NCBI GenBank assembly: GCA_964019335.1
Contig: OZ025677.1
Location: 310,001 to 374,000, forward strand
Length of the DNA: 64,000 bases
Origin: Diplonema japonicum
Taxonomy: Eukaryota; Protista; Euglenozoa: Diplonemea
Direction of reading: 5' to 3'
In this document: piece by piece, positions 7,832-62,938 of the stretch
How positions within the stretch are numbered: position 1 is the stretch's first letter
Layout: every line of letters starts with the position of its first letter
The notes under the pieces: model-generated
What the model saw: the letters and a program-made list of their open reading frames with translations, nothing else
What the model was told of the DNA's origin: nothing
Database searches by the model: none
Translations under genes and position numbers: made by a program

Positions 7832-10800
7832 GATTCTTTTTTGAAGGCAGAAGTGAATAAAAATTAATTTAAATCACCCCCATACGGTCCCCTGGTTCGG
7901 GATGCGGTTCATTAAAAAATACCCCCTATCTAAATAATGCAAACTGTTTCCCCTCTTTTTTCTTGCTCTGTGTCCTGTGTTCCTTATTTTCTTTTTTTTC
8001 TCCACGTCTCCTTTGCTCCTCCCGAGGCGTGGAGTGCCTACGCCTCGGATCATAACCCGATTCGAGGCGCAGAAAACTCAAGTACTACACACTTCTGGTG
8101 AAAGGGAAGGCTGTCAACCGTATTTGTACTTAATTGGGGGGGGGGGGGGGGGGGGGTGCAACCTATCAAGTAATAGTGACACGTTCTCCTTGAGTAGCTG
8201 TGCCCTCGTTCCGTAATAAGTACAAATACCGGTAGAAAAGAGTAAATGGCGCTGGGAGCTGGTGCCCAAAGAAGGAAAAAAATAAAAAAAATTAAAAAGA
8301 TAAAAAAATGAATGGCGAAAAGACCTTCGCTGCCAACAATAAAGACGACTTATTTCATCTTGTTGTTTACAGCAAAAGGGGAAAATGTGCTGGCAGAGCG
8401 AAAAGAAGGTGGGAGGGGGGGAAAAATCGGCTCTTGGTAAAAGAGTCGCAAAAAAAAAAAAGATTTTTTTTATTCCTCTATAATTTTCTGCTCAGTGTAT
8501 TAAGTTTTCTCTTCCTCACCCCTCACCCCTTTTATTCTGGTTGAATGAAGACCCAGGTAATCAGGCAACACCTCCCTTTTTTGTGAGCCAACGAAACCCA
8601 CCGCCGTCGAAGTTATAGGACTGGGCCCGTTGGTGTTGTTAGCAGCTAAGGTGAGTGGCGACACCCCAGGTGGCGTGTTGGCTGTTTAATACCAGGAAGA
8701 ATGCCCCTCCCCTGTCGCCGGGTGGCACCACACGCCCGATGATATGATCATAATAAAAGCTGACACCCACGTGGCGTTGATTTGGCTGGTCTTTTGGAAA
8801 AGCGGCCTTTAATTACGTAGTACCACTTCGTTTTACTATCTGATTTCTTTTTCAAATTCTTCGCATCTTCCCCCTCTAAGCTATTTAATATTCTTTCATT
8901 TCTGTCGCATTTCTTCTTTTCCATTGTTCCCCCCCCTCGTTTTCCTGCCATCCCTTCCATAAAGGAAGTCCCTTTTCTTTTTCTTTCTCTTATCGAACGC
9001 TTCACTGCGCGGAAACCCGTTGTTTTCGGGGTTAGGAAAGCAAGAAAACCGGAATCTTTGACAGAAGGGAGGGGGGAAAAGTCATCAAGGGAACAGGAGA
9101 AAGAAAGAGAGAAAGAAAGAGAAGAAAGAAGGAAACGAAAAAGAAAAAGAGAAGTGGGTAAACTTCCCCTGAAAATATCTTATTGCCAAGACATTCTTTT
9201 GCCCCCCCCTCTCCCCCCATTTGATGGCGGTATGCTCCGCCTGTGCTTCCCGCTAGAAGACAAGTAGCTTGACATTCTTTTTTTCTTTTATAGCTTGCTC
9301 GGGTTGATTGGCACGATGCTGGCTATTTATTGCTTCTTTTTTTTTTGTCCCCATCTCTTTTCTCCTTGCACCCCCAATTCATCATCTCAGCAGCAAGCCT
9401 ATACAAGTCGTGAGCTTTTGGTTTCCATAATGAGAACCCCCCCCTTTTTTTTATCCTTTCTTTTTTTTACTTGCCAATATATTGCTGTGCAAGACTATGG
9501 CGCTTGGTACATGAAAGAACTGCTGCAAACAACCCCAGCGAGAAAAGAAAATTCAGTTTTGTTCTTTTTCTCCTTCCTTTTTTTTTTGATATTACCTGCA
9601 GTATCCTCCCTATGGCCGTGGTGAAGCCATTTCTTTAAAAAAGCTGCTACTTGAAACCCCTTTGTACTGGTCTGAGGAAGAGCGGTCTCTGACCTAGTTT
9701 CTCCCTTTTTTCTTCTCCCCCCTTCGAAACCAAAAAGGCTAAAAAAGAAAAGATCCCATTTTAACGTGGTGCCCTTGAAGAACTTCTTTTCTTGTTGTTT
9801 GTTTCGTCGCTAGGATTGAAGAGCAGCCTTTTTTAATTTATTGCTGCGAACCTCTATGTCTCATGGAGTTCCATGATGTTAAGAAAAAAATTAAATACAA
9901 ATTTCGCAAAACATTTCTTTAAAAATCTTCTTTTTATTGCGATAAAGAGGTTCACAGTGTTTTTTTTTTTTTTTTTTTTTTTTTTTCGGATTTCCCCTCA
10001 TTCTGCACTCCATGACAGGTACTTCGTGGGGTGTGCTTCCGGTTCGTTTCTGTTTTTTTCTTTTTTCCCCTGATTTAAAAAAAGGGGGAGGATTCGAGTC
10101 TGCAATATTTATTCTTTTTCTTCATTCTGTTTATTTCTTGCTCTTGATTCTGCCTTCAGGGGCCTTACATGCCACGATATTCTACAACGGGTAAGAGAGC
10201 GGCCACCGTGTCAGCAGACCTATATCCATTTCTTGAGCATAGGAAAACAGTGTTAGCAATAAATGAGACAAGAATCTTTGCAGGATAGCACGCTTTTTTT
10301 TTTTTTTTTTTTTTTTGCCCAACAAAAAATCTAAGAAATAATTATCTTGAGTTCTGAATATTAGTGTACAGGGGCTTTAATTCAATGGGGAAGCGTAAAA
10401 GAAAGAAAGAAAGAAAAAAAAAACAGAAACCAAGGGGGGTGAAATTGCGTTGCCTTGACATCATGTCAGGCTTTCTGCCATTGGCATGGGAAAGCAGCAA
10501 TTTTTATGCTTTTTCTTTTCCCTGTGTGGAGAGCAAGAAAAAAAATACAAAGGCGGAAAAAGAACAAGACGTTGGCAAAGCACAAAATAAAAAAGATTCA
10601 TAAGCTGTGGCTATCTCATAGATTTGTATCTCGTTTTAGCAAGATTTCTTTTTTTCTTTTTTTTTTTTGTTAGGAAAAAGTTACAATGTCAAATGGGCGG
10701 GGGTACACCTCCCCCCCTATTTTTCCGGCTTTGAGTATGGCCCTAAGAAGGGTAGGCGTTTTTGCTTGGTCGTTTCTATTGAGAAGGAGAAAGAAATATA

Positions 10801-21436: not shown

Positions 21437-22611
21437 ATGTCTGTGGCTCTTCAGGTCACTCTTCCATCAACAGCGACTTACACAGTCGATGCACTGCATA
21501 GCGACACTATTGGCGAGGTGAGGGCAAAGATCGCAGCGTTATGCGAGCTACAGCCGGCGAAGTTCATGTTGACGTTTGAAGGAGACAGGCTCGAGGATTG
21601 CGCGAGGGTGGGTGGGTATCCTTTCGAAGACCTATCTACAGTGAACGTAGAACCAAGCAGTAGCGAGAAGAGGCGGATGAGGCTAGAAGAACTGCGGTGG
21701 GACCCAAAGGATACTGACATAGACTTATTACTAAAGTTGCAAAAGCTTTGCAAACATAAGGCCTTTGAGCAAGCAGATTCGTTAGACGCAAGATATAGCA
21801 AAGTGGTCGAAGTTCTCGCTGATGAGGCTGATGACTTGTTTGAAGATATATTGGTGTACGCTGCGTGGCTCGGCATGCTGGAGTGTGTTGCAGTGATCAT
21901 GGGCAACATAGACATCGACATCAACAAGCGCACTCTGACGTCGGTCTCGGACAGAGCAGGTTCATGGACGCCGCTCCACGCAGCAGCCGCGAATAACCAC
22001 CTAAAGCTCGTGGAGTACTTTTTAGCGCACTGTGCTGACCCCAACATTCCGTGCCTTCTCGGCACTCTTGCCGTCTGCTCACCAATCCACGAGGCAGCAT
22101 GCGGAAATCTCGTAGAGCTTGCCCACCTTCTTCTTTCACATGGCGCACATCTCGATGCCCGCGATGACAAGGGCCGCACCCCGCTGCACCTCGCTTCACG
22201 GCATGGTCACGTTAGTGTTATGACCGTGTTTCTGGAACAGGCATCTGCACAGGACATAGATGCCAAAGATACACAATGTATGCATGAGCTTTCTTTAAAA
22301 CTAAAAACTCAGGTAAAACTCCTCTTCATCACGCTGCAGGCAATGCTGACATAGCAAGGTTGCTACTCGACCACGGTGCTGATTGCGATGCACTCGACAT
22401 TTACCGCAGTACGCCCCTCCACGAAGCGGCCACTGGGGATCATTTCTCCACCCTTTCCCTCCTCCTTGGCTACGGGGCAGACCCCGGCATCCGAGACAGA
22501 TACAACCTGCTTGCCATCGACCACGCCGCTTATCACAACTTCAAAGAAGTGGCTGCGTTGCTGCGTGTAAAGACGGGCACCTGTCGACAAAATTGGTGCG
22601 TTATTTGTTAA
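21437..22611 (+). CDS. Ubiquitin-like domain + ankyrin repeat protein; exons 21437-22277 and 22313-22611
   Basis: N-terminal Ubl (DTIGEVRAKIA..LTFEGDRLED) and ankyrin motifs WTPLHAAA, GRTPLHLAS, STPLHEAA. A 35-nt GTATGC..CAG intron restores DTQC-KTPLHHAA. Confidence 0.88.
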
Positions 22612-22839
22612 GAAACATGTAAACAAGTTGTGTGGACATTCTAGAAGAGCCTTTACGTGCTGTAAAGCCCGTGCAGCTATCGGCGTCGAAAATAAGAGTT
22701 TACGAAATGAGAAAATAAAAAAGGTGCTTTCCCACGAGTTTAAAAAGTGTCCCCACAAGTGAATTCTGTCTGATTTTTCATAAATACCTGGGCCCCTCAG
22801 TAAGGTAACCTGTTCTACAGCAGCGATCGAACGTAAACC

Positions 22840-23156
22840 CTCTGTCTCTCTCTCTTGCCGCTACGTCCGTTGCCCGTCGGCCCGCCGCTAACGAAAGCCC
22901 TCCCCCAAAGGATCCCCTCCCCCAACACATTAATAATAATAATAAAAAAAAAAATGGATCCAAAACGACCCGCAGGAGAGGAGCCGACGCAAACCCGCAG
23001 GGAGAAGGAGCCGAGGCAGCGCAAACCCGCAAAGGTCACCAGGTTCGTTATGACTGGTCGGGCAGTATGATTCTCCCCCTAGATCCCTCCACTCCCTAAG
23101 AAAAAAAAAAAAAAAAATAAACAACAACTAGAGACCACCACAACCAGGGACCCGCA
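22840..23156 (+). repeat. SL-less copy of the MDP[KR]R 5' module (copy 0), interrupted at a CCCGCAAACC unit
   Basis: Shares ...aaaggatcccctccccc aacac A-run ATGGATCCAA.ACGAC.CGCAGGAG and ggcagtatga...ctaga with 23290-23570. Confidence 0.75.
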
Positions 23157-23195
23157 AACCAACGATTCTAAAGCTACAGTTTCTGTACTTTATTG
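23157..23195 (+). other. Complete 39-nt spliced-leader (mini-exon) sequence, genomic copy
   Basis: AACCAACGATTCTAAAGCTACAGTTTCTGTACTTTATTG contains the euglenozoan SL core CAGTTTCTGTACT.TATTG and, from memory, closely matches the Diplonema SL. It is followed by GTCGTT rather than the GTATG SL-RNA intron start. Confidence 0.9.
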
Positions 23196-23366
23196 GTCGT
23201 TCGTGTTCTGCTGGTGCCTGCCGCCTCTGCCTGGGTTTGCCGCTGCGTCCGTCGTCCGTCGTCGCCGTCGTCCGGGGGGGTTGTTTTGCCCGTCGGCCTG
23301 CCCGCCGCTCAACGAAAGGATCCCCTCCCCCCCAACACACACTATAAAACAAAAAAAAAAAAAAAA

Positions 23367-24227
23367 ATGGATCCAAGACGACTCGCAGGAGGAGGTGACC
23401 GCAGCCGCAGCCGCAGCCCGCAGGAGCAAGCCCGCAGCCCGCAGCACACGGCGCCGAGACCCACCCAACCAGGCAATCTGGTTGGGCAGTATGAATCCCC
23501 ACCCCCTAGATCCCCCCACCCCCCTTTAGAAAAAAAAAATAATAAAATAAAAAAATCACTAGCAGAGACCGCGGTTTTGACCGCCGCTGCTACAGCCACG
23601 GCCGCCCCAGCCGCCCTGAACGCCGCAGCCGACCCTGCCGCCCTGATCGCCGCAACTGAGACCGCCGCAGCCGCCTCTGCCGCAGCCACGACCGCCGCGA
23701 CCACGACCCCTGCAGCCGACCCTGCTATTGTTGAAGAGGGAGGAAAAGAGGGAGAAAAAAAGGGGTGGGTACTGGTGTATGGTGAACACCCTCCCGGGTT
23801 GAGGACGGGCCCGGCCCCTGCCTTCCCGAAAGCCCTGCTTTCAGGAAAGTGGGAGGCCCTGTCTGGGAACTCAGGGAGGGAGACCCTCCAATACGGGTAC
23901 CGGTGGGAGGGGGCGAACGCCAAGGTGCGCCCCACCACGGGGATCCCAGGGGGGGCGGAGGGGTGGGTGAGGGAGGTGGCCGCCGCCGCAGGGCTCGAGG
24001 TGGTCCCCAACCAGGTACTTGTCAACAAGTACAAGTCTGGTTGTGGGATTGCCGCCCACAAGGACGACGCGAGGCTGGGACCGATTGTCCTAGTCCTCTC
24101 GTACGGAGCCGAGACCACAATGGTCATGAGGAGGGGGGGCAGGGTGGCGAAATACTGCTTTTTCGCATGGACATTGGTCACTCTGCCCCTTTCCCCTTTT
24201 TTGATTCTCCCTCTTTCCCCCTCCTAA
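23367..24227 (+). CDS. AlkB-family 2OG-Fe(II) dioxygenase, C-terminally truncated, with basic/Ala-rich N-terminal extension
   Basis: RETLQYGYRW...PNQVLVNKYKSGCGIAAHKDDARLGPIVLVLSYGAETTMVMR contains the NxY and HxD motifs. The distal His and the 2OG-binding Arg strand are not seen before the low-complexity end. Confidence 0.75.
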   Translation: MDPRRLAGGGDRSRSRSPQEQARSPQHTAPRPTQPGNLVGQYESPPPRSPHPPLEKKNNKIKKSLAETAVLTAAATATAAPAALNAAADPAALIAATETAAAASAAATTAATTTPAADPAIVEEGGKEGEKKGWVLVYGEHPPGLRTGPAPAFPKALLSGKWEALSGNSGRETLQYGYRWEGANAKVRPTTGIPGGAEGWVREVAAAAGLEVVPNQVLVNKYKSGCGIAAHKDDARLGPIVLVLSYGAETTMVMRRGGRVAKYCFFAWTLVTLPLSPFLILPLSPS

Positions 24228-24559
24228 ATTTTACCCCCTGCCCCACTCATTCCTCCCTAGTATGTTTTTGAATTTGCCTCTTCTTCTTTTAAGCCTTTTT
24301 TGAGATTTTTATTTTTGAATTTTTATCATTTGGAGTTGCTTCTTCTTCTTCCCCTCTCCCTCCCATAAAGAAAAAGAGAAACCCATGCCTTCCTCGCAGG
24401 TTGGAACTTGATTGTCTGTTTTGGAATATTTTTATTTTCTCTTAAGATTTATCGTGCCTTGTGTGTCTTTTGAAGAAAAAAAAAAAAAAAAAACATTCTC
24501 AAGTCCCCCTTTTTATTTATTTTCTCAAGTCCCCCTTTTTATTTATTTTCTCAAGTCCC

Positions 24560-24629
<70 letters not shown>

Positions 24630-24643
24630 CTGGTGCCCCCCTT

Positions 24644-24836
24644 CCGCAAACCCGCAAACCCGCAAACCCGCAAACCCGCAAACCCGCAAACCCGCAAACC
24701 CGCAAACCCGCAAACCCGCAAACCCGCAAACCCGCAAACCCGCAAACCCGCAAACCCGCAAACCCGCAAACCCGCAAACCCGCAAACCCGCAAACCCGCA
24801 AACCCGCAAACCCGCAAACCCGCAAACCCGCAAACC
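24644..24836 (+). repeat. (CCCGCAAA)n octamer array running into the gap
   Basis: About 24 perfect units. Confidence 0.97.
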
Positions 24837-25036
24837 NNNNNNNNNNNNNNNNNNNNNNNNNNNNNNNNNNNNNNNNNNNNNNNNNNNNNNNNNNNNNNNN
24901 NNNNNNNNNNNNNNNNNNNNNNNNNNNNNNNNNNNNNNNNNNNNNNNNNNNNNNNNNNNNNNNNNNNNNNNNNNNNNNNNNNNNNNNNNNNNNNNNNNNN
25001 NNNNNNNNNNNNNNNNNNNNNNNNNNNNNNNNNNNN
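24837..25036. other. Assembly gap (200 N)
   Basis: N run. Confidence 1.
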
Positions 25037-25114
25037 GGGTTTGCGGGTTTGCGGGTTTGCGGGTTTGCGGGTTTGCGGGTTTGCGGGTTTGCGGGTTTGC
25101 GGGTTTGCGGGTTT
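25037..25114 (-). repeat. (CCCGCAAA)n array on the minus strand (reads GGGTTTGC on +)
   Basis: About 10 units, inverted relative to the array left of the gap. Confidence 0.97.
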
Positions 25115-25378
25115 CGGTCTGGTCGGGTGGTCGGCTTGGTCGGCGTCTCTCGTAGGCGTTCCTCCTGCGGGCGGCGGTCTCCGACGACGTTTCGTCTTCT
25201 AGGGTCCATTTTTTTTTTTTTTTGTGTTGAGGGGGGAGGGGATCCTTTGCTAAACGGCAGGCGGGCCGGGCCGAAACAACCCCCCCAGACGACGACGAAC
25301 GGACCGAGCGGACGCAGCAGGCACCAACAAAAACACAGACAATAAAGTACAGAAACTGTAGCTTTAGAATCGTTGGTT
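25037..25378 (-). mobile_element. Second SL-capped unit (SL 25378-25340, ATG 25209 MDPRRR...) running into the octamer array
   Basis: Identical 39-nt SL on the minus strand, followed by TCTGTG (no GT). The 5'UTR is homologous to 23196-23366. Confidence 0.75.
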
Positions 25379-25392
25379 ATCGAAGTTTTTTT

Positions 25393-25535
25393 AGGGGGAC
25401 TTGAGAATAAAAATAAAAAGGGGGACCCGAGAATAAAAATAAAAAGGGGGACTCGAGAATAAAAATAAAAAGGGGGACTCGAGAATAAAAATAAAAAGGG
25501 GGACTCGAGAATAAAATAAAAAAGGGGACTTGAGG
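25393..25535 (-). repeat. 26-27-nt minisatellite TTCTC(A/G)AGTCCCCCTTTTTATTTTTA, about 6 units (3' end of the preceding unit)
   Basis: The same repeat occurs 3 times at 24496-24566 just before the A60 tail. Here it is followed (minus sense) by A7 and then the SL. Confidence 0.85.
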
Positions 25536-26350
25536 ATGTTGCCACCTCCAGCGGAACACCCAGCGACCCGGCCTTCGCAAGAAGCATCTCCTCAGTCCTC
25601 TCCCTTCCAGGGTCCGTTCCTTCTTCAAGGATGATCCCTACCCGGCCCTCGAACTGGATGATGAACTTGAGCAGTCGGCCCCCCGGCTCCACCCGGGTTT
25701 GCGGGTTTGCGGGGTTTGCGGGTATGTGGGCGGGTAAAAAAAAAAGGTAATCCTCCTCCTCTTTCCTCACACGTCTGTTTTCTCCTGACGCCTTTCGTTT
25801 CGCTCCGGCTGTCGTTCTTCTTCTTGGGCGCCGGCCTTGGGTTTGCGGCTGCATCCTCAATACCTGTGGTGATAATTGTGGAGTTAGACTTCTTGTCGAA
25901 AAGAATGAAAGAAATGATGAGGAGGTGGTGTAGCCTGTGGCAAGTAGACCGACATATTTTGATAATAAAGTCTCAAAAAAAACAAAATGAAAATAGTACT
26001 AATCAAATACTCCTTTTTAAAAGGTGCAACGTTGTAAATTCACACGAGCACTATAAGAAGCACGTGTGACCATCCGGTAATACACATACATGAGTCACGT
26101 TGTGCAGTCCCGGACGTGGAGTGATTCCTGTTGAAATAAACTTAAGATAAAAATGGTGAAAGAAAGGACGTTAATATACAAAACAGTGGGATAAGTTCCT
26201 TTTGAAGGTTATATCTATGGAGCGACTATGAAGAGAACTAGATGATTACACTTTCTTCTGCTTTCTTTTCCTTTCTTTCACTAATTCATCTTAAGCCCCG
26301 ACAAATCAATGACTATTAAATGGGGAAACAAAAATCTTATCCTAACAGGA

Positions 26351-29300
26351 TCACGTTGCAATCACGTCTTCACCCTCCTCTGGGGGGGAGTTTTCGTCAA
26401 AACCACCCATCTCAACGAAGTCATTTTCATCGTACTTCTGTGATGAATTAAAAAGAAAACAAGACATACCAGCAGCTCGATCTGGCTCGTCAAATCCATA
26501 ACGTTCCTGTTTCTCGATTTCCACCACATGAACCCGAACACCAGACATAAAGTGCCAAGAACCCCTGCTATCACTGCCAGAATAACAATAACAGTGCTAC
26601 TGCCACCATTACTACTAGGAACCGGTGTAGGTACTGCTGTAGTAACCGAACCGGGCGAAGTTGTTTGTCTCGTTCCTGGTTCAAGAGAATCAGGAGCAGT
26701 AGTGGGAACGGCTGTGGTTCCAGGGACAAGAGTGTTCGGCACTTCTGTTGGTTCTGCTGTTGTTCCAGGTACCAGAGTAGATACTGTGGTGCTTGGTGGT
26801 GAATCGGTTTCTGGGACATCATCTGGACCTTGTGTCGTGGGAATGGAAGTCGATCGCGCAGGTACAGAGGACACCGGAGCCCCAGTTGATGCAATAGGAA
26901 TACCTGTTGCAGGAACATCACTGATAGGTTGGGGTGTTGATGGTGCTGAGGTGGGATTCAATGTTATTGGTGGGTTTGTAGGTACAGCCGTACTTGGGAT
27001 ACTTGTAGCAGGTACATCTGTTGATGGTGCTGAAGTCGGAATCGATGTTGTTGGGTTTGTAGGTACAGCCGTACTTGGGATACCTGTTGCAGGTACATCA
27101 CTGATAGGTTTGGGTGTTGGCGGTGCTGAAGTCGGAATCGATGTTGTTGGTGGGTCTGTAGGTACAGCTGTACTCGGGATACCTGTTGCAGGTACATCAC
27201 TGACAGGTTTGGGTGTTGGTGCTGAAGTTGGAATCGATGTTGTTGGTGGGTCTGTAGGTACAGCTGTACTTGGGATACCTGTGGCAGGTGCATCACTGAT
27301 AGGTTTGGGTGTCAACGGGGCTAAAGTGGGACTCAATGTTGTTGGTGGGTTTGTAGGTACAGCCGTACTTGGGATACCTGTTGCAGGAACATCACTGATA
27401 GGTTTGGGTGTTGATGGTGCTGAAGTGGGACTCAATGTCGCTGGTGGGTTTGTAGGTACAGCCGTACTCGGAGTACCTGTAGCAGGAACATCACTGATAG
27501 GTATCGGTGTCAACGGTGCTGAAGTCGGACTCAATGTTGTTGGTGGGTTTGTAGGTATAGCTGTACTCGGGATACCTGTGGCAGGTACATCACTGATAGG
27601 TTTGGGTGTCGATGGCGCTAAGGTGGGAATCGATGTTGTTGGTGGGTTTGTAGGTACAGCCGTACTTGGGATACCTGTTGCAGGAACGTCACTGATAGGT
27701 TTGGGTGTTGATGGTGCTGAAGTGGGACTCAATGTCGCTGGTGGGTTTGTAGGTACAGCCGTACTCGGAGTACCTGTAGCAGGAACATCACTGATAGGTA
27801 TCGGTGTCAACGGTGCTGAAGTCGGACTCAATGTTGTTGGTGGGTTTGTAGGTACAGCTGTACTCGGGATACTTGTAGCAGGTACATCACTGATAGGTTT
27901 GGGTGTTGATGGTGCTGAAGTCGGAATCGATGTTGTTGGTGGGTTTGTAGGTACAGCCGTACCCGGGATACCTGTTGCAGGTACATCACTGATAGGCTTG
28001 GGTGTTGATGGAGCTAAAGACTGCGGGACTGTGGGACTCAATGTTGTTGGTGGGTTTGTAAGTACAGTACTCGGGATACTTGTAGGTACAGCCGTACTCG
28101 GGATACCTGTTGCAGGTACATCACTGATAGGCTTGGGTGTTGATGGTGCTGATGTGGGAATAAATGTTGTTGGTGGGTCTGTAGGAACACTCGTAGGGTC
28201 TGGAATGCACTGCGGAAAGTTCGACGCATTCGGCTCGCAGTAGGTGCCTACTGGGCATGTTGTGTTTACACATGGATCGGAAACGGGAACACATTGAGGA
28301 ATATTGGAAGAGTCTGGTTCGCAGTCGTGGTAAGGTGCACATGTCATGTTCGCACAAGGGTCGGAAACTGGAATGCATTGAGGAACATTTGCAGCGTTAA
28401 GCTTGCAGTCGTAGTACGGTTGACATGTTGTGTTAGCACATGGATTGGGATCGGGAACACATGATGGAAAGTTGTTGACTCCAGGTTCGCAATGGTAGTA
28501 AGGCGCACACAACATGTTTCCACACGGATTAGGGTCGGGGATGCATTTTGCGACATAGTTTAAATCAGCCTCGCAGTGGTTGTATGGCAAACATGTTGCG
28601 TTAGCACAAGGGCATTTGTCAGCGCATGACTGAGTGGCACCAACCCATACGCATTGCGAGTCACTGACGCAGACACTAGAGGAGAGTGACTGGCATGGCT
28701 GCCTCACAGTCACTGCTTTCCCCACATTCTTTCCCCAAGTAGAGTTCAGATCGCACAGGCTGCTCAACGAGTCTGTGATCGCATCTATCTGAACATTCAC
28801 AAAATGTTCATCAGCAGGTAGAGACACAACGGGCCGCAGGGCTTGTTGGACCTTCTCGTCAGGAGGTGTTGGCGCATCCGAAGAGCGTACCGCAATACCG
28901 AATATTTGCACTGCCGCTTGGGTCAACTCTGTCAGCGCGGTAGAATAAGAAGATGTGTCTTGAAACTCAGTTCCTGTTACAATGATCAGCACCCGCTTCC
29001 TGCCGTCAACAGGGGAAGTTCTGAACAAGCTCACAGCCTTCTGAAGTCCGGCAAGCAAGTACGTAGTCTGAGGTACAGGCTGCATAACCAGACTCCCACC
29101 CATAAAGTTCGTTTCCTGATAGACAAGGTCAGCTTCTACTTCATCGCTAGCGCCCGTGAGAAGCCCCATACTGGTTCCTGCGCCTGTGGGGGCGAGTACC
29201 TGCCTACTGTCAGACGGGGACCACAACTCACTACCTGCGAACTGCAGGAATGCAAGGCGAACCGCCCGCGTACCTGAAGTAGATGCGGCACCAGAACGCT

Positions 29301-58204: not shown

Positions 58205-61200
58205 TCAAACAACAACAATAGATGTCTTGCGGGACAAGGAGCTTGTTGGCTGGAGTAGGAAGCTCTCCGAGAGCCCGTTCTCTCCTGTAATGGCGCCCCT
58301 GTACCTTCTGAAGGATGAAATACTGCTTCGCGACATTCTGTTAGAGGGTGTTGGCGTTGCTGAAGGTGTGGGCGTGCTGATTGTGTTCGACAATGGTGTC
58401 ATGATGTCCGTCTCCAACGAGAGGTGCCGCGACAGAACGATGTTGACCGGCGTCGTCTGACAAGCAGGCACAGAGACAGACGCCGCATTCTCTTCCCACA
58501 CCTCAGCCTGGAGCTTGGACCTTCGATTGACAACAAATATGTATATCTCCGTGCAGACGTCAAAGGAGATCTTTATGATAAGTACCACAGCAGCTGCCAT
58601 GTATAGTGTGGCAGCTACCTTGTGTGACCAGTTCCCGTCCATGTCGTGCCCTTGGAAGAACCCGATGGACATGAGGACCAGCCCCGTCCCTTGCATCCCC
58701 AGACTCACAAAGTCCAACACGCAGTCTCGCATCCTGGCATGCGGCCAGATACACGCTTCCAAAGCTAGCAACAAAAAGAAAACAATAGCCATCGCCATCT
58801 TCACCCAACCGCACTGCTCCAGAGAATCAACCGGCACCGCTGCGATCCCCGCCAGTGTGAAGGACGACGCAAACTCGATCACAGAAAACCAACTAGCCGC
58901 CTGGAGATACGGACGTGTCACCGACGCATATCTGTTGATCCAGTGCACCTCAGAGCAGACGCTTACCCATTCGCCAGCACCTACGATGGCAACGAGCTGT
59001 CTTGGAAGCGGCTTTTTGTCGATGCGGTACACAGCCTTGCTGGGGATGTCTCTCTTGATGATAAAGAAGATGAACACCGGCACAGTGCAGCACACCAACA
59101 GCGCGACGACGCCGCCCACTATTTCCATCACACTGCGGGACTCTATCAACATCATAATCCCCCCCAATGCCGTCCCCTGGTAGAGCGCCTGAAATATCGC
59201 TAACTGGGCAGAGGGGAACCTAATGAACCCCCGCGTGTCGAGCCCCTCCTTCATCTTGGTGCACAGCCCAGTGCCTGCTTTGCTGAGGACAAACAGAGTA
59301 ATCTGTGCCACTAACGTGACACCAGTGATGATGCACAGGTTTCCCACAACAGCACCTGCCGCGTGGCTGCCCCATGCACTGATACCTGTAGGGTGCAAGG
59401 CAAATGGAAAAGCCCTATCATCTTTCATTGTGCACCGCCCGTTGATCAGAACAAGTCTTGTTGCTGTGCCAGCACCTCCAGAGAGGCCAAGTGCCCCAGC
59501 AGCGGCGGCAACACTTCCCATGGTGCTCACGCCCTCAGCTTCAGATGGCTCTGTGATGGAATCTGTACCCTCCATTGGTATAGTCATAACCGTAGCCGGT
59601 GGCTGCGTGGCAGGGGACTGCGTTGTGTTCGGCGACATTGTCTCAGGAGATGTTGGGCTTGGAGTGGGTGGCACACCAGGAATGCCCGTTGATGGAGCTT
59701 GCGTGACTGGGGACTGCGTAGTAGGTGCTTGAGTTGCTGGAGCCAGCGTAACAGGGGGCTGGGTGTCTGGAGGTTGCGTAGCAGGAACTTGCGTGACAGG
59801 AGGCTGGGTATTGGGCGCTTGTGTCAAGGGCGAAGAAGTCGCAGGGGCCTGGGTTGATGGGTATGCGGTAACAGGAGGCTGGGTGTCGGGTGCCTGGGTC
59901 TCTGGTGCTTGTGTTGCAGGGGCCAGTGTATCAGGTGACTGAGTTATGGGGGCTTGTGTCAGGGGAGACGAAGTCGCAGGGGCTTGGGTTGATGGGAATG
60001 CGGTAACAGGAGGCTGGGTGTCGGGTGCCTGGGTGTTTGGCGCCTGTGTTGTAGGGGCCAGTGTATTAGGGGGCTGAGTATCGGGTGCTTGTGTCACGGG
60101 TGCTTGTGTCACGGGTGATTGTGTCACGGGTGATTGCGTTGTCGGTATTTGTGTTTTAGGTGCTGAAGTGGCAGGAGGCTGCGTTTCTGGTGCAGACGTC
60201 GGTGTCTGTGTAACAGGAGTCTGGGTATCGGGTGCTTGTGTCACAGGTGACTGAGTTGCTGGTGCTGATGTGAAAGGTGCGGGAGTCGGGGGCACGCCAG
60301 GAATGCCAGTCGGAGGTGCGTTAGTTGCTGGCGCCTGCGTAACAGGGGCGAGAGTCGGGGGCACACCAGGAATGCCTGTCAGAGGTGCTTGCGTGGCAGG
60401 TGCTTGTGTTGGAGGTGCACTAGTTGCTGGTGCCTGCGTAACAGGGGCGAGAGTAGGGGGCACACCAGGAATGCCTGTCAGAGGTGCTTGCGTGGCAGGT
60501 GCTTGTGTTGGAGGTGCACTAGTTGCTGGTGCCTGCGTAACAGGGGCGAGAGTAGGGGGCACACCAGGAATGCCTGTCAGAGGTGCTTGCGTGGCAGGTG
60601 CTTGTGTTGGAGGTGCACTAGTTGCTGGTGCCTGCGTAACAGGGGCGAGAGTAGGGGGCACACCAGGAATGCCTGTCAGAGGTGCTTGCGTGGCAGGTGC
60701 TTGTGTGGGAGGTGCGCTAGTTACTGGTGCCTGCGTAACAGGGGCGAGAGTAGGGGGCACACCAGGTGTGCTTGTTGCTGGTGCCTGCGTAAACGGAGCA
60801 GAAGTAGCAGGGGCAAGAGTTGATGGTGCTAGTGTTGCTGGTGCTGACGTGGGCATAGCTGTGAGAGGTGCGAGAGTCGGGGGCACACCAGGTATGCTAG
60901 TCGGTGGTGCTTGTGTGGTCGGGGGCTGCGTGTCGGGTGCTTGTGTCAGAGGAGATTGAGTGTCTGGTGCCACCGTGTCTGGTGAAATCGTTGCTGGTGC
61001 TGGTGTATCGGGAGATGCAGTGTCTGGTGCTTGTGTGGCTGGTGCCTGAGTTGGAGGCACACCAGGGGTGCTCGTTGCCGGTGCTTGAGTAGCTGGGGCA
61101 GGTGTCGCAGGTGCTGGCGTTGCAGGGACAGGTGTGGTCGGGGCAGACGTAATGGGGGTAAGAGTTGGAGGTACCAGCGTGGCAGGCACTGAGGTCGCAG

Positions 61201-62938
61201 GGGCAGGTGTGACCGGGGAAGGCGTATTTGGCGCAGGAGTGGAAGGTGCAAGCGTTGCTGGTGCGGGTGTCAGGGGCACAGCAGTTGCAGGAGAAGGTGT
61301 GGTCGGGGATGGCGTAATTGGCGCAGGGGTGGCAGGTGCAAGAGTTGCTGGTGCGGGTGTCAGGGGCACAGCAGTTGCAGGAGCAGGTGTGGTCGGGGAT
61401 GGCGAACTTGGCGCAGGGGTGGGAGGTGCGAGTGTTGCAGGAGCAGATGTCAAAGGTGCGGGTGTTGAAGGCGCTGGAGTCAGGGGCACAGCAGTTGCAG
61501 GAGCAGGTGTGCTCGGGGATGGCGTACTTGGCGCAGGGGTGGGAGGTGCGAGTGTTGCAGGAGCAGGTGTCAAAGGTGCGGGTGTTGAAGGCGCTGGAGT
61601 CAGGGGCACAGCAGTTGCAGGAGCAGGTGTGCTCGGGGATGGCGTACTTGGCGCAAGAGTGGGAGGTGCGAGTGTTGCAGGAGCAGGTGTCAAAGGTGCG
61701 GGTGTTGAAGGCGCTGGAGTCAGGGGCACAGCAGTTGCAGGGGCAGGTGTAACCGGGGAAGGCGTACTTGGCGCAAGAGTGGGAGGTGCAAGCGTTGCTG
61801 GTGCGGGTGTCAGGGGCACAGCAGTTGCAGGGGCAGGTGTGGTCGGGGATGGCGTACTTGGCGCAGGAGTGGGAGGTGCAAGTGTCGGCGGTATGGGCGT
61901 AGGAGGTGCGACTGTCGCAGGGGCCGGAGTTGCCGGAGCTAAAGTAGGTGGCACAGCTGTTGGAGGGGCGGGTGTGGTGGGGGCGGATGTTACCGCCAGA
62001 GGGACCGACAATATAAGAAGCCCCGCCCCTGAATCGGCTACATAAAGGTACCCACCTTCCAAGTACAATGCAACCGCCTTCCCGTTGGTGTTGTAGCTTG
62101 CGATCACGGCTGAAGGAAATGCCGGATTAATTACGTCATGAACCCCCACCCCAGATGTATCGCCAGCTACATAGAGGTACCTTCCGTCACCGGAGACGAG
62201 CACGCCCTCGGCATCCGTACCAGAAGTAGGGATGGTGGCTAACAGCTGCGGAGTGTAGGGGTCGACTACCCTGACGACCTTCACGCCGCCTGCCATGTCA
62301 GCAACGTAGACAGTACCCGAGTGGTACCATACATCACGTGCGTTGACGGTGGCTAAGCTGTTGGTGACGATGGGGTTGTAGGGGTCGGACACGTCCATGA
62401 TGTACAAGCCAGCGGAAGAAGCAGCGACGTAGATGAAGAAGCCGGAGGAAACGACCTCGAAGGCGGCATCTGCGGTGGGGACTGTTCTGAGGATGGTGGG
62501 GCTCGAGGGGGTGCTTACATCCACGATGACGAGGCCAGTGTTGGCGGCAGCAACATAGAGGATGTTCCCCTTCACAGCCATGCCCTTTGCGTAGGGCCCG
62601 GGGATGACAAAGGTGGTCAGGACGATGGGGCTGGAGGGTGTTGTGATGTCGAAGATCTTTACGTCACCAGGCCCCTCAGCGCAGAACAAGATGTTCCCAG
62701 AGATCTCAACGTCCCTAGCATTGTCAAAGGTGGGGTAGCTCGCTATGTTGAACGGGGCATTACGGTTTGTCACGTCTACAAGCAGCAGGCCACTGTTCCC
62801 GTCCGCCACGTAGCAGATATTCCCAAGGCACCTTGTGTCCCGTGCTGTTCCCACCGTGTCTATCTCGCCTACGTAGGTAGGCCACGCCATGGACAGACTG
62901 CATAGCAATCCCACAGTTGATACAAATCGTAGAAGCAT
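58205..62938 (-). CDS. Surface protein: signal peptide, LVIVD-repeat beta-propeller, long Pro/Thr/Ala mucin stalk, C-terminal multi-TM domain of the Bodo/diplonemid DGF-1-like type
   Basis: Repeats YVADGNSGLLLVDVT, LYVAAANTGLVIVDVS and others; TPAP/TQAP repeats; C-terminal LHPTG..GAVVGN..FPS..YQG..WF followed by about 7 hydrophobic helices. Confidence 0.9.
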   Translation of the reverse strand: MLLRFVSTVGLLCSLSMAWPTYVGEIDTVGTARDTRCLGNICYVADGNSGLLLVDVTNRNAPFNIASYPTFDNARDVEISGNILFCAEGPGDVKIFDITTPSSPIVLTTFVIPGPYAKGMAVKGNILYVAAANTGLVIVDVSTPSSPTILRTVPTADAAFEVVSSGFFIYVAASSAGLYIMDVSDPYNPIVTNSLATVNARDVWYHSGTVYVADMAGGVKVVRVVDPYTPQLLATIPTSGTDAEGVLVSGDGRYLYVAGDTSGVGVHDVINPAFPSAVIASYNTNGKAVALYLEGGYLYVADSGAGLLILSVPLAVTSAPTTPAPPTAVPPTLAPATPAPATVAPPTPIPPTLAPPTPAPSTPSPTTPAPATAVPLTPAPATLAPPTLAPSTPSPVTPAPATAVPLTPAPSTPAPLTPAPATLAPPTLAPSTPSPSTPAPATAVPLTPAPSTPAPLTPAPATLAPPTPAPSTPSPSTPAPATAVPLTPAPSTPAPLTSAPATLAPPTPAPSSPSPTTPAPATAVPLTPAPATLAPATPAPITPSPTTPSPATAVPLTPAPATLAPSTPAPNTPSPVTPAPATSVPATLVPPTLTPITSAPTTPVPATPAPATPAPATQAPATSTPGVPPTQAPATQAPDTASPDTPAPATISPDTVAPDTQSPLTQAPDTQPPTTQAPPTSIPGVPPTLAPLTAMPTSAPATLAPSTLAPATSAPFTQAPATSTPGVPPTLAPVTQAPVTSAPPTQAPATQAPLTGIPGVPPTLAPVTQAPATSAPPTQAPATQAPLTGIPGVPPTLAPVTQAPATSAPPTQAPATQAPLTGIPGVPPTLAPVTQAPATSAPPTQAPATQAPLTGIPGVPPTLAPVTQAPATNAPPTGIPGVPPTPAPFTSAPATQSPVTQAPDTQTPVTQTPTSAPETQPPATSAPKTQIPTTQSPVTQSPVTQAPVTQAPDTQPPNTLAPTTQAPNTQAPDTQPPVTAFPSTQAPATSSPLTQAPITQSPDTLAPATQAPETQAPDTQPPVTAYPSTQAPATSSPLTQAPNTQPPVTQVPATQPPDTQPPVTLAPATQAPTTQSPVTQAPSTGIPGVPPTPSPTSPETMSPNTTQSPATQPPATVMTIPMEGTDSITEPSEAEGVSTMGSVAAAAGALGLSGGAGTATRLVLINGRCTMKDDRAFPFALHPTGISAWGSHAAGAVVGNLCIITGVTLVAQITLFVLSKAGTGLCTKMKEGLDTRGFIRFPSAQLAIFQALYQGTALGGIMMLIESRSVMEIVGGVVALLVCCTVPVFIFFIIKRDIPSKAVYRIDKKPLPRQLVAIVGAGEWVSVCSEVHWINRYASVTRPYLQAASWFSVIEFASSFTLAGIAAVPVDSLEQCGWVKMAMAIVFFLLLALEACIWPHARMRDCVLDFVSLGMQGTGLVLMSIGFFQGHDMDGNWSHKVAATLYMAAAVVLIIKISFDVCTEIYIFVVNRRSKLQAEVWEENAASVSVPACQTTPVNIVLSRHLSLETDIMTPLSNTISTPTPSATPTPSNRMSRSSISSFRRYRGAITGENGLSESFLLQPTSSLSRKTSIVVV

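Follow-up and report, generated by a model that had tools for sequence, protein, structure and literature searches.

The 64,000-nt window examined here (positions 310,001-374,000 of contig OZ025677.1 in the Diplonema japonicum assembly GCA_964019335.1) holds, between positions 22855 and 25723, a block of related units, some of them with a spliced leader (SL) and some with an A tail. The block consists of two subtelomeres set end to end by the scaffolder, each made up of truncated copies of one element family, and we interpret the units as broken copies of an autonomous, SL-capped, SLACS/CRE-like retrotransposon of the class lacking long terminal repeats (non-LTR), which resides at chromosome ends and moves in the manner proposed below; we put the probability of this reading at roughly 0.8. 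An earlier note, made from the sequence alone, had taken the units for reverse-transcribed trans-spliced RNAs or for elements that target SL genes. Their origin by reverse transcription from the SL-bearing and polyadenylated RNA of a retroelement related to CRE/SLACS is borne out by the SL, the tails, the truncations and a target-site duplication (TSD). Its further suggestion, that the units are mobilised in trans by a reverse transcriptase (RT) encoded elsewhere, is contradicted by the full-length copies described here.

Copies of one element in the window

The 39-nt SL, AACCAACGATTCTAAAGCTACAGTTTCTGTACTTTATTG, is present in exact form at 23157-23195 on the plus strand and at 25340-25378 on the minus strand (there were no matches in 100 shuffles), as the earlier note had recorded. 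Behind both SLs lie homologous 5' untranslated regions (UTRs), each ending in an A run and a start codon, at 23367 (MDPRRL, plus strand) and 25209 (MDPRRR, minus strand), respectively. The third, SL-less copy that the note had listed is indeed there, in diverged form, from ~22855. These units, designated A (SL-less), B (plus strand) and C (minus strand), can be aligned with each other and with a full-length copy from another locus, and the 26-nt 3' minisatellite with its A tails (A60 and A7) was likewise recovered, Tandem Repeats Finder (TRF) placing the repeat at two sites. The combination of SL, poly(A), 5' truncation and, in one instance, a TSD establishes the copies as retro-copies.

Architecture of the full-length element

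The search for longer copies with RT and endonuclease that the earlier note had recommended was successful, the endonuclease being of the restriction-like (RLE) type. The full-length element measures ~10-11 kb and comprises the SL, a ~170-nt 5'UTR, one open reading frame (ORF) of ~2,800 aa, and a ~0.7-kb 3'UTR that ends in the 26-nt minisatellite, followed by poly(A). Within the ORF, an AlkB-like dioxygenase, an OTU protease, the RT and the RLE follow one another in this order, with a C-terminal ~700 aa bearing no domain assignment. Natural copies at the right end of contig C16 and the left end of contig C9 served as references; in both, the SL and the MDPRR start lead into a frame of 2,866-2,959 codons, and at the left end of C9 the element ends A7/(CCCGCAAA)~78 at the contig terminus (here and below, a slash marks a junction). 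The C16 copy, which starts MDPRRN, contains the Pfam AlkB, OTU and RVT_1 domains in a single frame; the RVT_1 match scores 60 bits, with the RT at aa 1602-1805, a domain that is missing from the truncated copies of the window. The RLE module, CX4CX10HX3CX6RHD..E..RPAD..D, begins at aa 2082, thus C-terminal to the RT, and its columns are kept in 14 aligned homologues, with spacings slightly off the published SLACS/CRE pattern (PMC12857005). The RT is of the non-LTR type: its best PDB matches are R2 proteins (E=9e-8, vs 0.014 for L1), and the best named homologues are Diplonema papillatum proteins automatically called 'SLACS 132 kDa'. A search of the ESM Atlas with the RT-RLE region returned only generic RVT_1 clusters. 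From these predicted domains, we classify the element as an RLE-bearing, SLACS/CRE-like non-LTR retrotransposon.

In a rival reading, which follows the earlier note in having the units moved in trans, they would be non-autonomous retro-copies, processed RNAs of an AlkB-carrying subtelomeric gene family. The window's own copies encode no RT, as this would predict, and short units composed of SL, 5'UTR and an A-rich tract recur (unit A, unit C and the end of locus L001) and could act as passengers of the short interspersed nuclear element (SINE) type. Nevertheless, AlkB, OTU, RT and RLE share one ORF that begins at the same MDPRR codon, and at least 11 copies with long ORFs keep the MDPRR start and AlkB in one frame with OTU, RT and RLE; all parts of the window's units, moreover, could be mapped to a single element, which has its RT in cis. 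Since the RT is found in the full-length copies, it is not 'elsewhere', and the window merely holds truncated copies; AlkB, similarly, is a domain of the element's own polyprotein, as opposed to cargo carried by a unit. We therefore regard mobilisation in trans as very unlikely, and treat the element below as autonomous.

The AlkB domain of the full-length copy (AHKDD ... HQWTHH ... RVSITLR; 50.5 bits) has both the HxD...H triad for iron and the RxxxxxR site for 2-oxoglutarate. Its best PDB match is ALKBH8, and its nearest relatives are ALKBH8-type and small bacterial-type dioxygenases (35-39% identity). The note's observation of AlkB in one unit holds insofar as the ORF at 23367-24227 of unit B matches Pfam 2OG-FeII_Oxy_2 (38 bits vs a cut-off of 31.2 bits; domain at ~23865-24137, HxD at 24057), but this ORF is not intact: a 3'UTR fragment is inserted at 24155/24156, and the copy keeps HxD alone, being cut ahead of the distal catalytic His and the Arg-bearing RxSxTxR motif. 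In laboratory practice, RNA is treated with AlkB ahead of reverse transcription; most plausibly, the AlkB domain of the element would act in a similar fashion, stripping base methylation from the template RNA and letting the RT copy it fully, and the OTU domain would most plausibly process the polyprotein or remove ubiquitin.

This polyprotein family also occurs in D. papillatum (KAJ9446222.1, P0154; KAJ9442719.1, P0290), where proteins of up to 2,635 aa keep the AlkB-OTU-RT-RLE order, with 34% identity over 1,353 aa; the architecture is therefore old within Diplonema and already public. One D. papillatum fragment has been deposited as 'tRNA (carboxymethyluridine(34)-5-O)-methyltransferase', apparently named from its AlkB domain. 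Literature searches for AlkB in non-LTR elements found nothing relevant, AlkB and 'non-LTR retrotransposon' never occurring together among the best matches, and a search for SL-bearing retrotransposons in Euglenozoa was equally unproductive. The earlier note's term 'undescribed' consequently needs qualification: no description was found in the literature searched, but telomere-targeting SLACS/CRE relatives are known in fungi, and AlkB-OTU-RT proteins have been deposited for D. papillatum under automatic names. Three things are new: that an autonomous element encodes the SL in its DNA; the AlkB fusion, which D. papillatum has as well but which the literature searched does not describe; and the terminal repeats with their C-rich strand outward, to which we return below.

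Copy number, position and orientation

The family is repeated and not single-copy, as the note had anticipated. We found 161 copies of the SL in the genome (at most one mismatch) and classed them by what comes after it; the SL+GTCGT class, to which units B and C belong, accounts for 96. Of these, 87 lie at most 50 kb from a contig end, 85 with the sense strand outward and two inward; among the remainder, four abut 200-N gaps (three with terminal arrays), and the others represent related families in internal regions rich in transposable elements. The AlkB piece has >100 matches genome-wide, for the most part no farther than ~10 kb from a contig end and in many cases inside an open frame of 2,300-3,000 aa, and the RT has ~80, some 30 of which are at roughly 100% amino acid identity; nearly all are at contig ends, as is a second family with 49% identity. 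What stands ahead of an SL is either the preceding unit's A tail or ...CCCGCAA, and the sense strand of the copies is collinear with the C-rich strand of (CCCGCAAA)n. Confinement to terminal arrays and subtelomeres, in essentially a single orientation, is what is expected of a telomere-specific retrotransposon.

At the left end of C24 (G000:C24:1-46000), the second family is present in at least three head-to-tail copies of exactly 10,659 bp, together with further copies, all sense outward; the exact spacing suggests unequal recombination beside transposition. Separately, other retroelement families also open with a complete DNA-encoded SL right behind the poly(A) of a preceding element (L002, L029, L022, L030 and L021, the first two at G000:C3:788 kb and C61:1-2355): one encodes a coiled-coil ORF1-like protein and adjoins an RNase H-bearing long interspersed nuclear element (LINE), and one opens with a weak OTU-like domain.

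The spliced leader and the true SL RNA gene

The genuine SL RNA gene reads SL+GTACCCAATCTG..., is ~130 nt in length and has a T9 end and a conserved upstream block. Together with an oppositely oriented 5S rRNA gene, it makes up a 352-bp unit that is repeated in tandem, and the nine assembled copies (at L008, G000:C15:777580-780223; L003; L020; and the end of G000:C59) are all uninterrupted. Rfam yielded no match to an SL RNA family, the only match being the 5S rRNA beside the true SL gene. The SL is covered ~900 times more deeply than unique sequence, and the SL RNA arrays are therefore collapsed in the assembly. The notion that the SL units are themselves SL RNA genes or pseudogenes, with the SL RNA intron behind the SL, draws on the GT that directly follows the SL in both main subfamilies, as it would at an exon/intron boundary. 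However, over 115 nt behind the SL, units B and C share an identity of 0.50-0.51 with the true intron, against 0.51 for shuffled sequence, so that the match to the SL RNA gene which the earlier note had named as grounds for abandoning its proposal is absent; moreover, the units run on into a start codon and a 2,800-aa ORF, and possess neither the T-run terminator nor the conserved upstream block. With the true gene in hand, we rejected this notion, which is scarcely credible.

The retrotransposon SL instead bears the marks of splicing. In four copies, counted by junction, the SL is joined directly to GATCCCC, with exact removal of a 5'UTR segment that in unit B occupies 23196-23318 and has GT at its start and AG at its end. 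A further seven copies carry a relic SL doublet, SL+TTTCTGTACTTTATTG, as expected if an SL-bearing transcript were re-trans-spliced at the CAG within the SL; a full 5' SL combined with relic tandem SLs truncated at an SL-internal AG is the signature of SL-tagged retro-copies. In other families, the SL is joined to unrelated sequence starting GG or GA. The SL therefore appears to have come from a trans-spliced mRNA and to have become a heritable part of the element's DNA. SL/GTCGT is the dominant form, and the SL+GTCGT start is common to diverged families. No copy has an AG acceptor before GTCGT, and no AG/GTCGT master copy was found; we infer, therefore, that the RNA must begin at the DNA-encoded SL, whether by an internal start signal, by processing or by a switch of template onto SL RNA. 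As a candidate SL-less master with an AG acceptor, AGGTCGTYYGTGTTYT was also sought: its four matches are all due to chance, and none continues as the 5'UTR.

Two related schemes would supply the SL differently: it could be added in each cycle if the RT, at the element RNA's 5' end (GUCGU...), switched template to SL RNA at UUAUUG/GU, or masters inserted just after SL+GT in unassembled SL RNA arrays could use the SL RNA promoter. Both gain from the GT that the two main subfamilies, and related internal families too, have behind the SL, from the lack of an AG acceptor before GTCGT in any copy, and from the collapse of the SL RNA arrays in the assembly; U6/L1 chimeras are reportedly a precedent, and one SL RNA/5S array adjoins a truncated element, at the end of C15. 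This element, however, lies beside the SL RNA gene and is not inserted in it. Furthermore, the four SLs joined exactly after the AG that closes the GT...AG segment, the seven doublets at the SL-internal CAG, and the SLs of other families joined to unrelated sequence starting GG or GA are signatures of splicing and not of microhomology jumps. We consider these schemes unlikely, and favour an SL acquired by trans-splicing and since inherited with the element.

The terminal repeat

The (CCCGCAAA)n arrays, which the earlier note had counted as part of the units, are the terminal repeat of the genome. This 8-nt repeat was found at 32 of 60 sampled left ends, while the other 28 begin with other sequence and have no array in either orientation; the right ends sampled were those of C2, C3 and C16. 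At every array-bearing end examined in the assembly (among them C1, C4, C5 and C9, left; C2, C3 and C16, right), the repeat reads CCCGCAAA 5'→3' outward; further examples of arrays are L041:1-640, L001:1840-1865 and L115:1603-1626. A genome-wide search with (TTAGGG)4 found no TTAGGG arrays, a literature search for the repeat motif produced only noise, and a TERT (telomerase reverse transcriptase) candidate is located at G000:C41:533974-534300. The outward C-rich strand reverses the canonical polarity, in which the G-rich strand forms the 3' end, and we know of no described telomere that shares it.

Nor are SL genes the target, as the note had envisaged: the places where copies are found are terminal (CCCGCAAA)n arrays and the poly(A) tails of other copies, and not the SL exon of SL RNA genes.

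Proposed mechanism of movement

We propose that the endonuclease nicks the G-rich strand behind a T run. Candidate sites would be GGGTTT^GCGG in the terminal repeat, which recurs every 8 bp, the stretch of T that faces the poly(A) tail of a resident copy and, in rare cases, a similar sequence such as GTATTT^CGCC. The TTT-3' end thus exposed would pair with the poly(A) tail of the RNA and prime reverse transcription. Nicking after TTT and priming on poly(A) would explain the fixed orientation, the head-to-tail stacks in which an A tail abuts an SL, the 5' junctions of the form CCCGCAA/ACCAACG and the 3' junctions of the form A(n)/CCCGCAAA. Short units may have been primed at internal A-rich or CCGAAA sites, or else been eroded and re-capped.

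One case can be observed directly, and it is the insertion that interrupts the AlkB ORF of unit B. This 3'UTR-only, 5'-truncated retro-copy (24156-24626, plus strand; 471 bp) is flanked by the TSD AAATAC (left copy 24150-24155, right copy 24624-24629, plus strand), and the empty site, GGTGGCGAAATAC/CTGGTG, is found in 11 other copies. The insertion is 99.4% identical to the 3'UTR of the C16 copy, contains 2.8 copies of the 26-nt minisatellite (24496-24567; TRF) and ends in a pure A60 tail (24567-24626); loose read ends occur at 24155/24156. It is a young retro-copy, with the 5' truncation, A tail and TSD that characterize target-primed reverse transcription (TPRT). To judge from the TSD, the first nick would have fallen at GTATTT^CGCC on the bottom strand, with TTT-3' pairing with the poly(A).

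Alternatively, elements might be added at the very terminus with no endonuclease: the C-rich 3' end (...GCAAACC-3') or an A tail would pair with a free cDNA's 3' end, which is the complement of AACC..., and be extended along that cDNA, after which telomerase would re-cap the A tail. The AAACC and AA microhomologies at the SL 5' junctions and the A(n)/CCCGCAAA 3' junctions would suit such capture, as would the uniformly outward orientation and the existence of a TERT candidate. It is, nonetheless, rather doubtful: it needs a C-rich 3' end, which is a presumed feature, the TSD-flanked insertion lies within an ORF and not at a terminus, and the RLE module is kept across homologues. We thus prefer endonuclease-dependent insertion.

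Several considerations weigh against our interpretation. The nicking specificity rests on one TSD-flanked insertion together with junction sequences, as insertions into the repeat leave no readable TSD. The polarity of the terminal repeat is unorthodox, which makes the context of end maintenance puzzling, and the elements point 3'-outward, opposite to MoTeR and FoTeR, their telomeric relatives in fungi. That copies are highly identical, and that the tandem at C24 is exact, may owe much to subtelomeric recombination and not to transposition. The placement in the CRE clade follows from a motif pattern and automatic names, and not from a tree with reference sequences. Finally, our independent sequence data were public Logan contigs, whose kind of library is undefined and which bear on neither transcription, the RNA 5' end, current activity nor the gap.

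Organization of the block

On the left-hand side of the gap, unit A (22855-23156, plus strand) is the innermost and most diverged copy, as judged by alignment and sequence. It starts at ~22855 with no SL, has its ATG at 22954 (MDPKRP), and is truncated at its 3' end right behind an internal A-rich tract (A17, 23101-23117), degenerate terminal repeats at ~23133-23160 closing the unit; it is an old copy, truncated at both ends. Logan contigs from an independent study cross 22600-23179, including the junction between unit A and the SL, with zero mismatches, and a contig of another sample departs from the reference at 22858, the inner boundary of the stack. Ahead of this left subtelomere, at 22000-22600, the last gene resembles an ankyrin-repeat protein and has, by eye, a short GT...AG intron at ~22289-22313.

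Unit B begins with the complete DNA-encoded SL (23157-23195, plus strand), which is joined to ...CCCGCAA through the microhomology AAACC, and continues with its 5'UTR (23196-23366, plus strand) and polyprotein codons 1-263 (MDPRRL...; 23367-24155, plus strand). This part of the ORF has 97% amino acid identity to copies lying in open frames of 2,800-3,000 aa, and was also mapped onto the C16 copy. Beyond the 471-bp insertion, the interrupted ORF resumes with TACCTGGTGCCCCCCTTC (24627-24644, plus strand) and, 18 bases on, gives way to the left terminal array, (CCGCAAAC)24 (24644-24836, plus strand; TRF), which caps the left-hand chromosome or contig end. Unit B is thus a 5' fragment with a terminal-repeat cap.

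A scaffold gap of 200 N (24837-25036) separates this array from the right terminal array, (GGGTTTGC)9.8 (25037-25114; TRF), which caps the right-hand end, reads (GCAAACCC)n on the minus strand and is the reverse complement of the left one. No unit or reading frame is continuous over 24837-25036; ORFs listed through the gap were rejected as artefacts of repeat translation. As the two arrays converge on the gap, and the same repeat caps ends genome-wide, we take the gap for a join, made in scaffolding, between two contig ends that each finish in terminal repeat; a true interstitial fusion is possible. The published assembly of D. japonicum YPF1604 was built from HiFi reads with hifiasm and scaffolded using Hi-C data and YaHS (reads listed in PMC13598402); the genome note mentions neither telomeres, transposons nor spliced leaders. 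Four other 200-N gaps are flanked by subtelomeric blocks of this family (L111, L113, L108 and L110), at ~401.5 kb of C20, ~495.2 kb of C46, ~165.8 kb of C64 and ~188.6 kb of C89 (G000). A terminal array abuts the gap, on one side only, in C20, C64 and C89, whereas in C46 an SL lies 30 bp from the gap with no array. Several scaffolds of the assembly have probably been joined through chromosome ends.

On the right-hand side, unit C (25112-25378, minus strand) comprises the SL (25378-25340), the 5'UTR and, from the ATG at 25209, 32 codons, being truncated at ...GACCGAAA, where it runs straight into the array. It lacks GTCG, the first four bases expected after the SL, and is 94.6% identical to positions 1352-1625 of the C16 copy. 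Directly ahead of its SL, the junction with unit D (25379-25392, minus strand) consists of an A7 tail (T7 on the plus strand, 25386-25392) and the 7-nt filler CTTCGAT. Unit D itself (25393-25723, minus strand), head-to-tail with unit C, is an internally deleted copy: terminal-repeat relics (25694-25723) are followed by a 147-nt C-terminal ORF fragment (25541-25687), 96.6% identical to positions 8727-8873 of the C16 copy, and by 5.5 copies of the 26-nt minisatellite (25393-25534; TRF). Long tandem repeats of 81-135 bp, G-rich on the plus strand, occupy 26350-28460, where they adjoin the right subtelomere, and 59797-61924; they probably encode Thr/Pro/Ala-rich repeat proteins on the minus strand.

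Implications

Diplonemids are among the most abundant groups of marine eukaryotes, and the present analysis identifies their chromosome ends, in D. japonicum, as a non-canonical 8-nt repeat stacked with retrotransposons. The polarity of this repeat, if confirmed, would run counter to the rule by which a G-rich 3' strand forms the end of a telomere. The element shows how a retrotransposon copes in a host where every mRNA must receive an SL, namely by making the leader part of itself, and it offers a natural system for studying the SL sequence's own role in initiation, capping and translation. It also adds AlkB, a putative demethylase of RNA or DNA, to the accessory domains of non-LTR retrotransposons, in parallel with RNA viruses. 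In practical terms, several scaffolds of a public assembly appear to be telomere-joined.

These strands might be drawn together in a single, distinctly speculative picture, which we think improbable as a whole. Telomerase would make the chromosome ends jointly with a retrotransposon of domesticated appearance, and three properties of these ends would lack precedent: the repeat's C-rich strand would run 5'→3' to the terminus; the DNA-borne SL would be a portable start site and translation leader that escapes the need for trans-splicing; and AlkB would demethylate the hypermodified SL cap, or other methylated bases, letting the RT copy to the first nucleotide.

Comparison with known systems

Close parallels are SLACS, CZAR, CRE1 and CRE2 of trypanosomatids, members of the CRE clade, in which the RT is likewise followed by CCHC and a PD-(D/E)xK-type RLE; a further likeness is seen in the A-rich 3' end, the absence of LTRs, the euglenozoan host and the association with the SL. 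The insertion site of these elements is in the SL exon, between its nt 11 and nt 12, of SL RNA genes, so that a split SL flanks them. The Diplonema elements, in contrast, start with a single, whole SL that forms their 5' end, and their sites are terminal repeats; AlkB and OTU domains set them apart as well, and their ORF is more than twice as long.

Further counterparts are MoTeR1 of Magnaporthe, FoTeR of Fusarium and Cnl1 of Cryptococcus, which are telomere-targeting SLACS/CRE relatives (PMC12857005, PMC7367193; the former also cites SART1, considered below). They, too, combine RT with RLE and are confined to telomere repeats, where they share one orientation, stack head-to-tail and have their sense strand along the repeat's C-rich strand; TPRT is inferred from asymmetric junctions. 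The fungal elements, however, present their 5' end to the terminus, whereas the Diplonema element presents its 3' end, because the repeat itself runs the other way round; moreover, they have no SL, AlkB, OTU or 3' end composed of minisatellite and poly(A).

TRAS1 and SART1 of Bombyx mori, LINEs specific to telomere repeats, resemble the Diplonema element in their endonuclease-dependent insertion at one position of the telomeric repeat, in fixed orientation and with poly(A) abutting the repeat. They differ in having an apurinic/apyrimidinic (APE)-type endonuclease N-terminal to the RT and two ORFs, and are unrelated to the CRE group.

As regards the leader, SL-tagged retrogenes of dinoflagellates are also DNA copies that open with an SL, and they include tandem relic SLs truncated at an SL-internal AG (PMC5585692, PMC6050394, PMC12014239). 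Those 'recycled processed cDNAs' are, however, host genes copied by unknown RTs, whereas in Diplonema it is the retrotransposon's own RNA that carries the SL, and a single SL is stably inherited (96 copies with one SL vs seven doublets). Lastly, an analogue of the domain combination is found in plant RNA virus replicases of the Flexiviridae type, in which an AlkB-like 2OG-Fe(II) dioxygenase is fused into the replication polyprotein, in some cases with an OTU-type protease; these are RNA viruses with an RNA-dependent RNA polymerase, whereas the Diplonema element is a retroelement.

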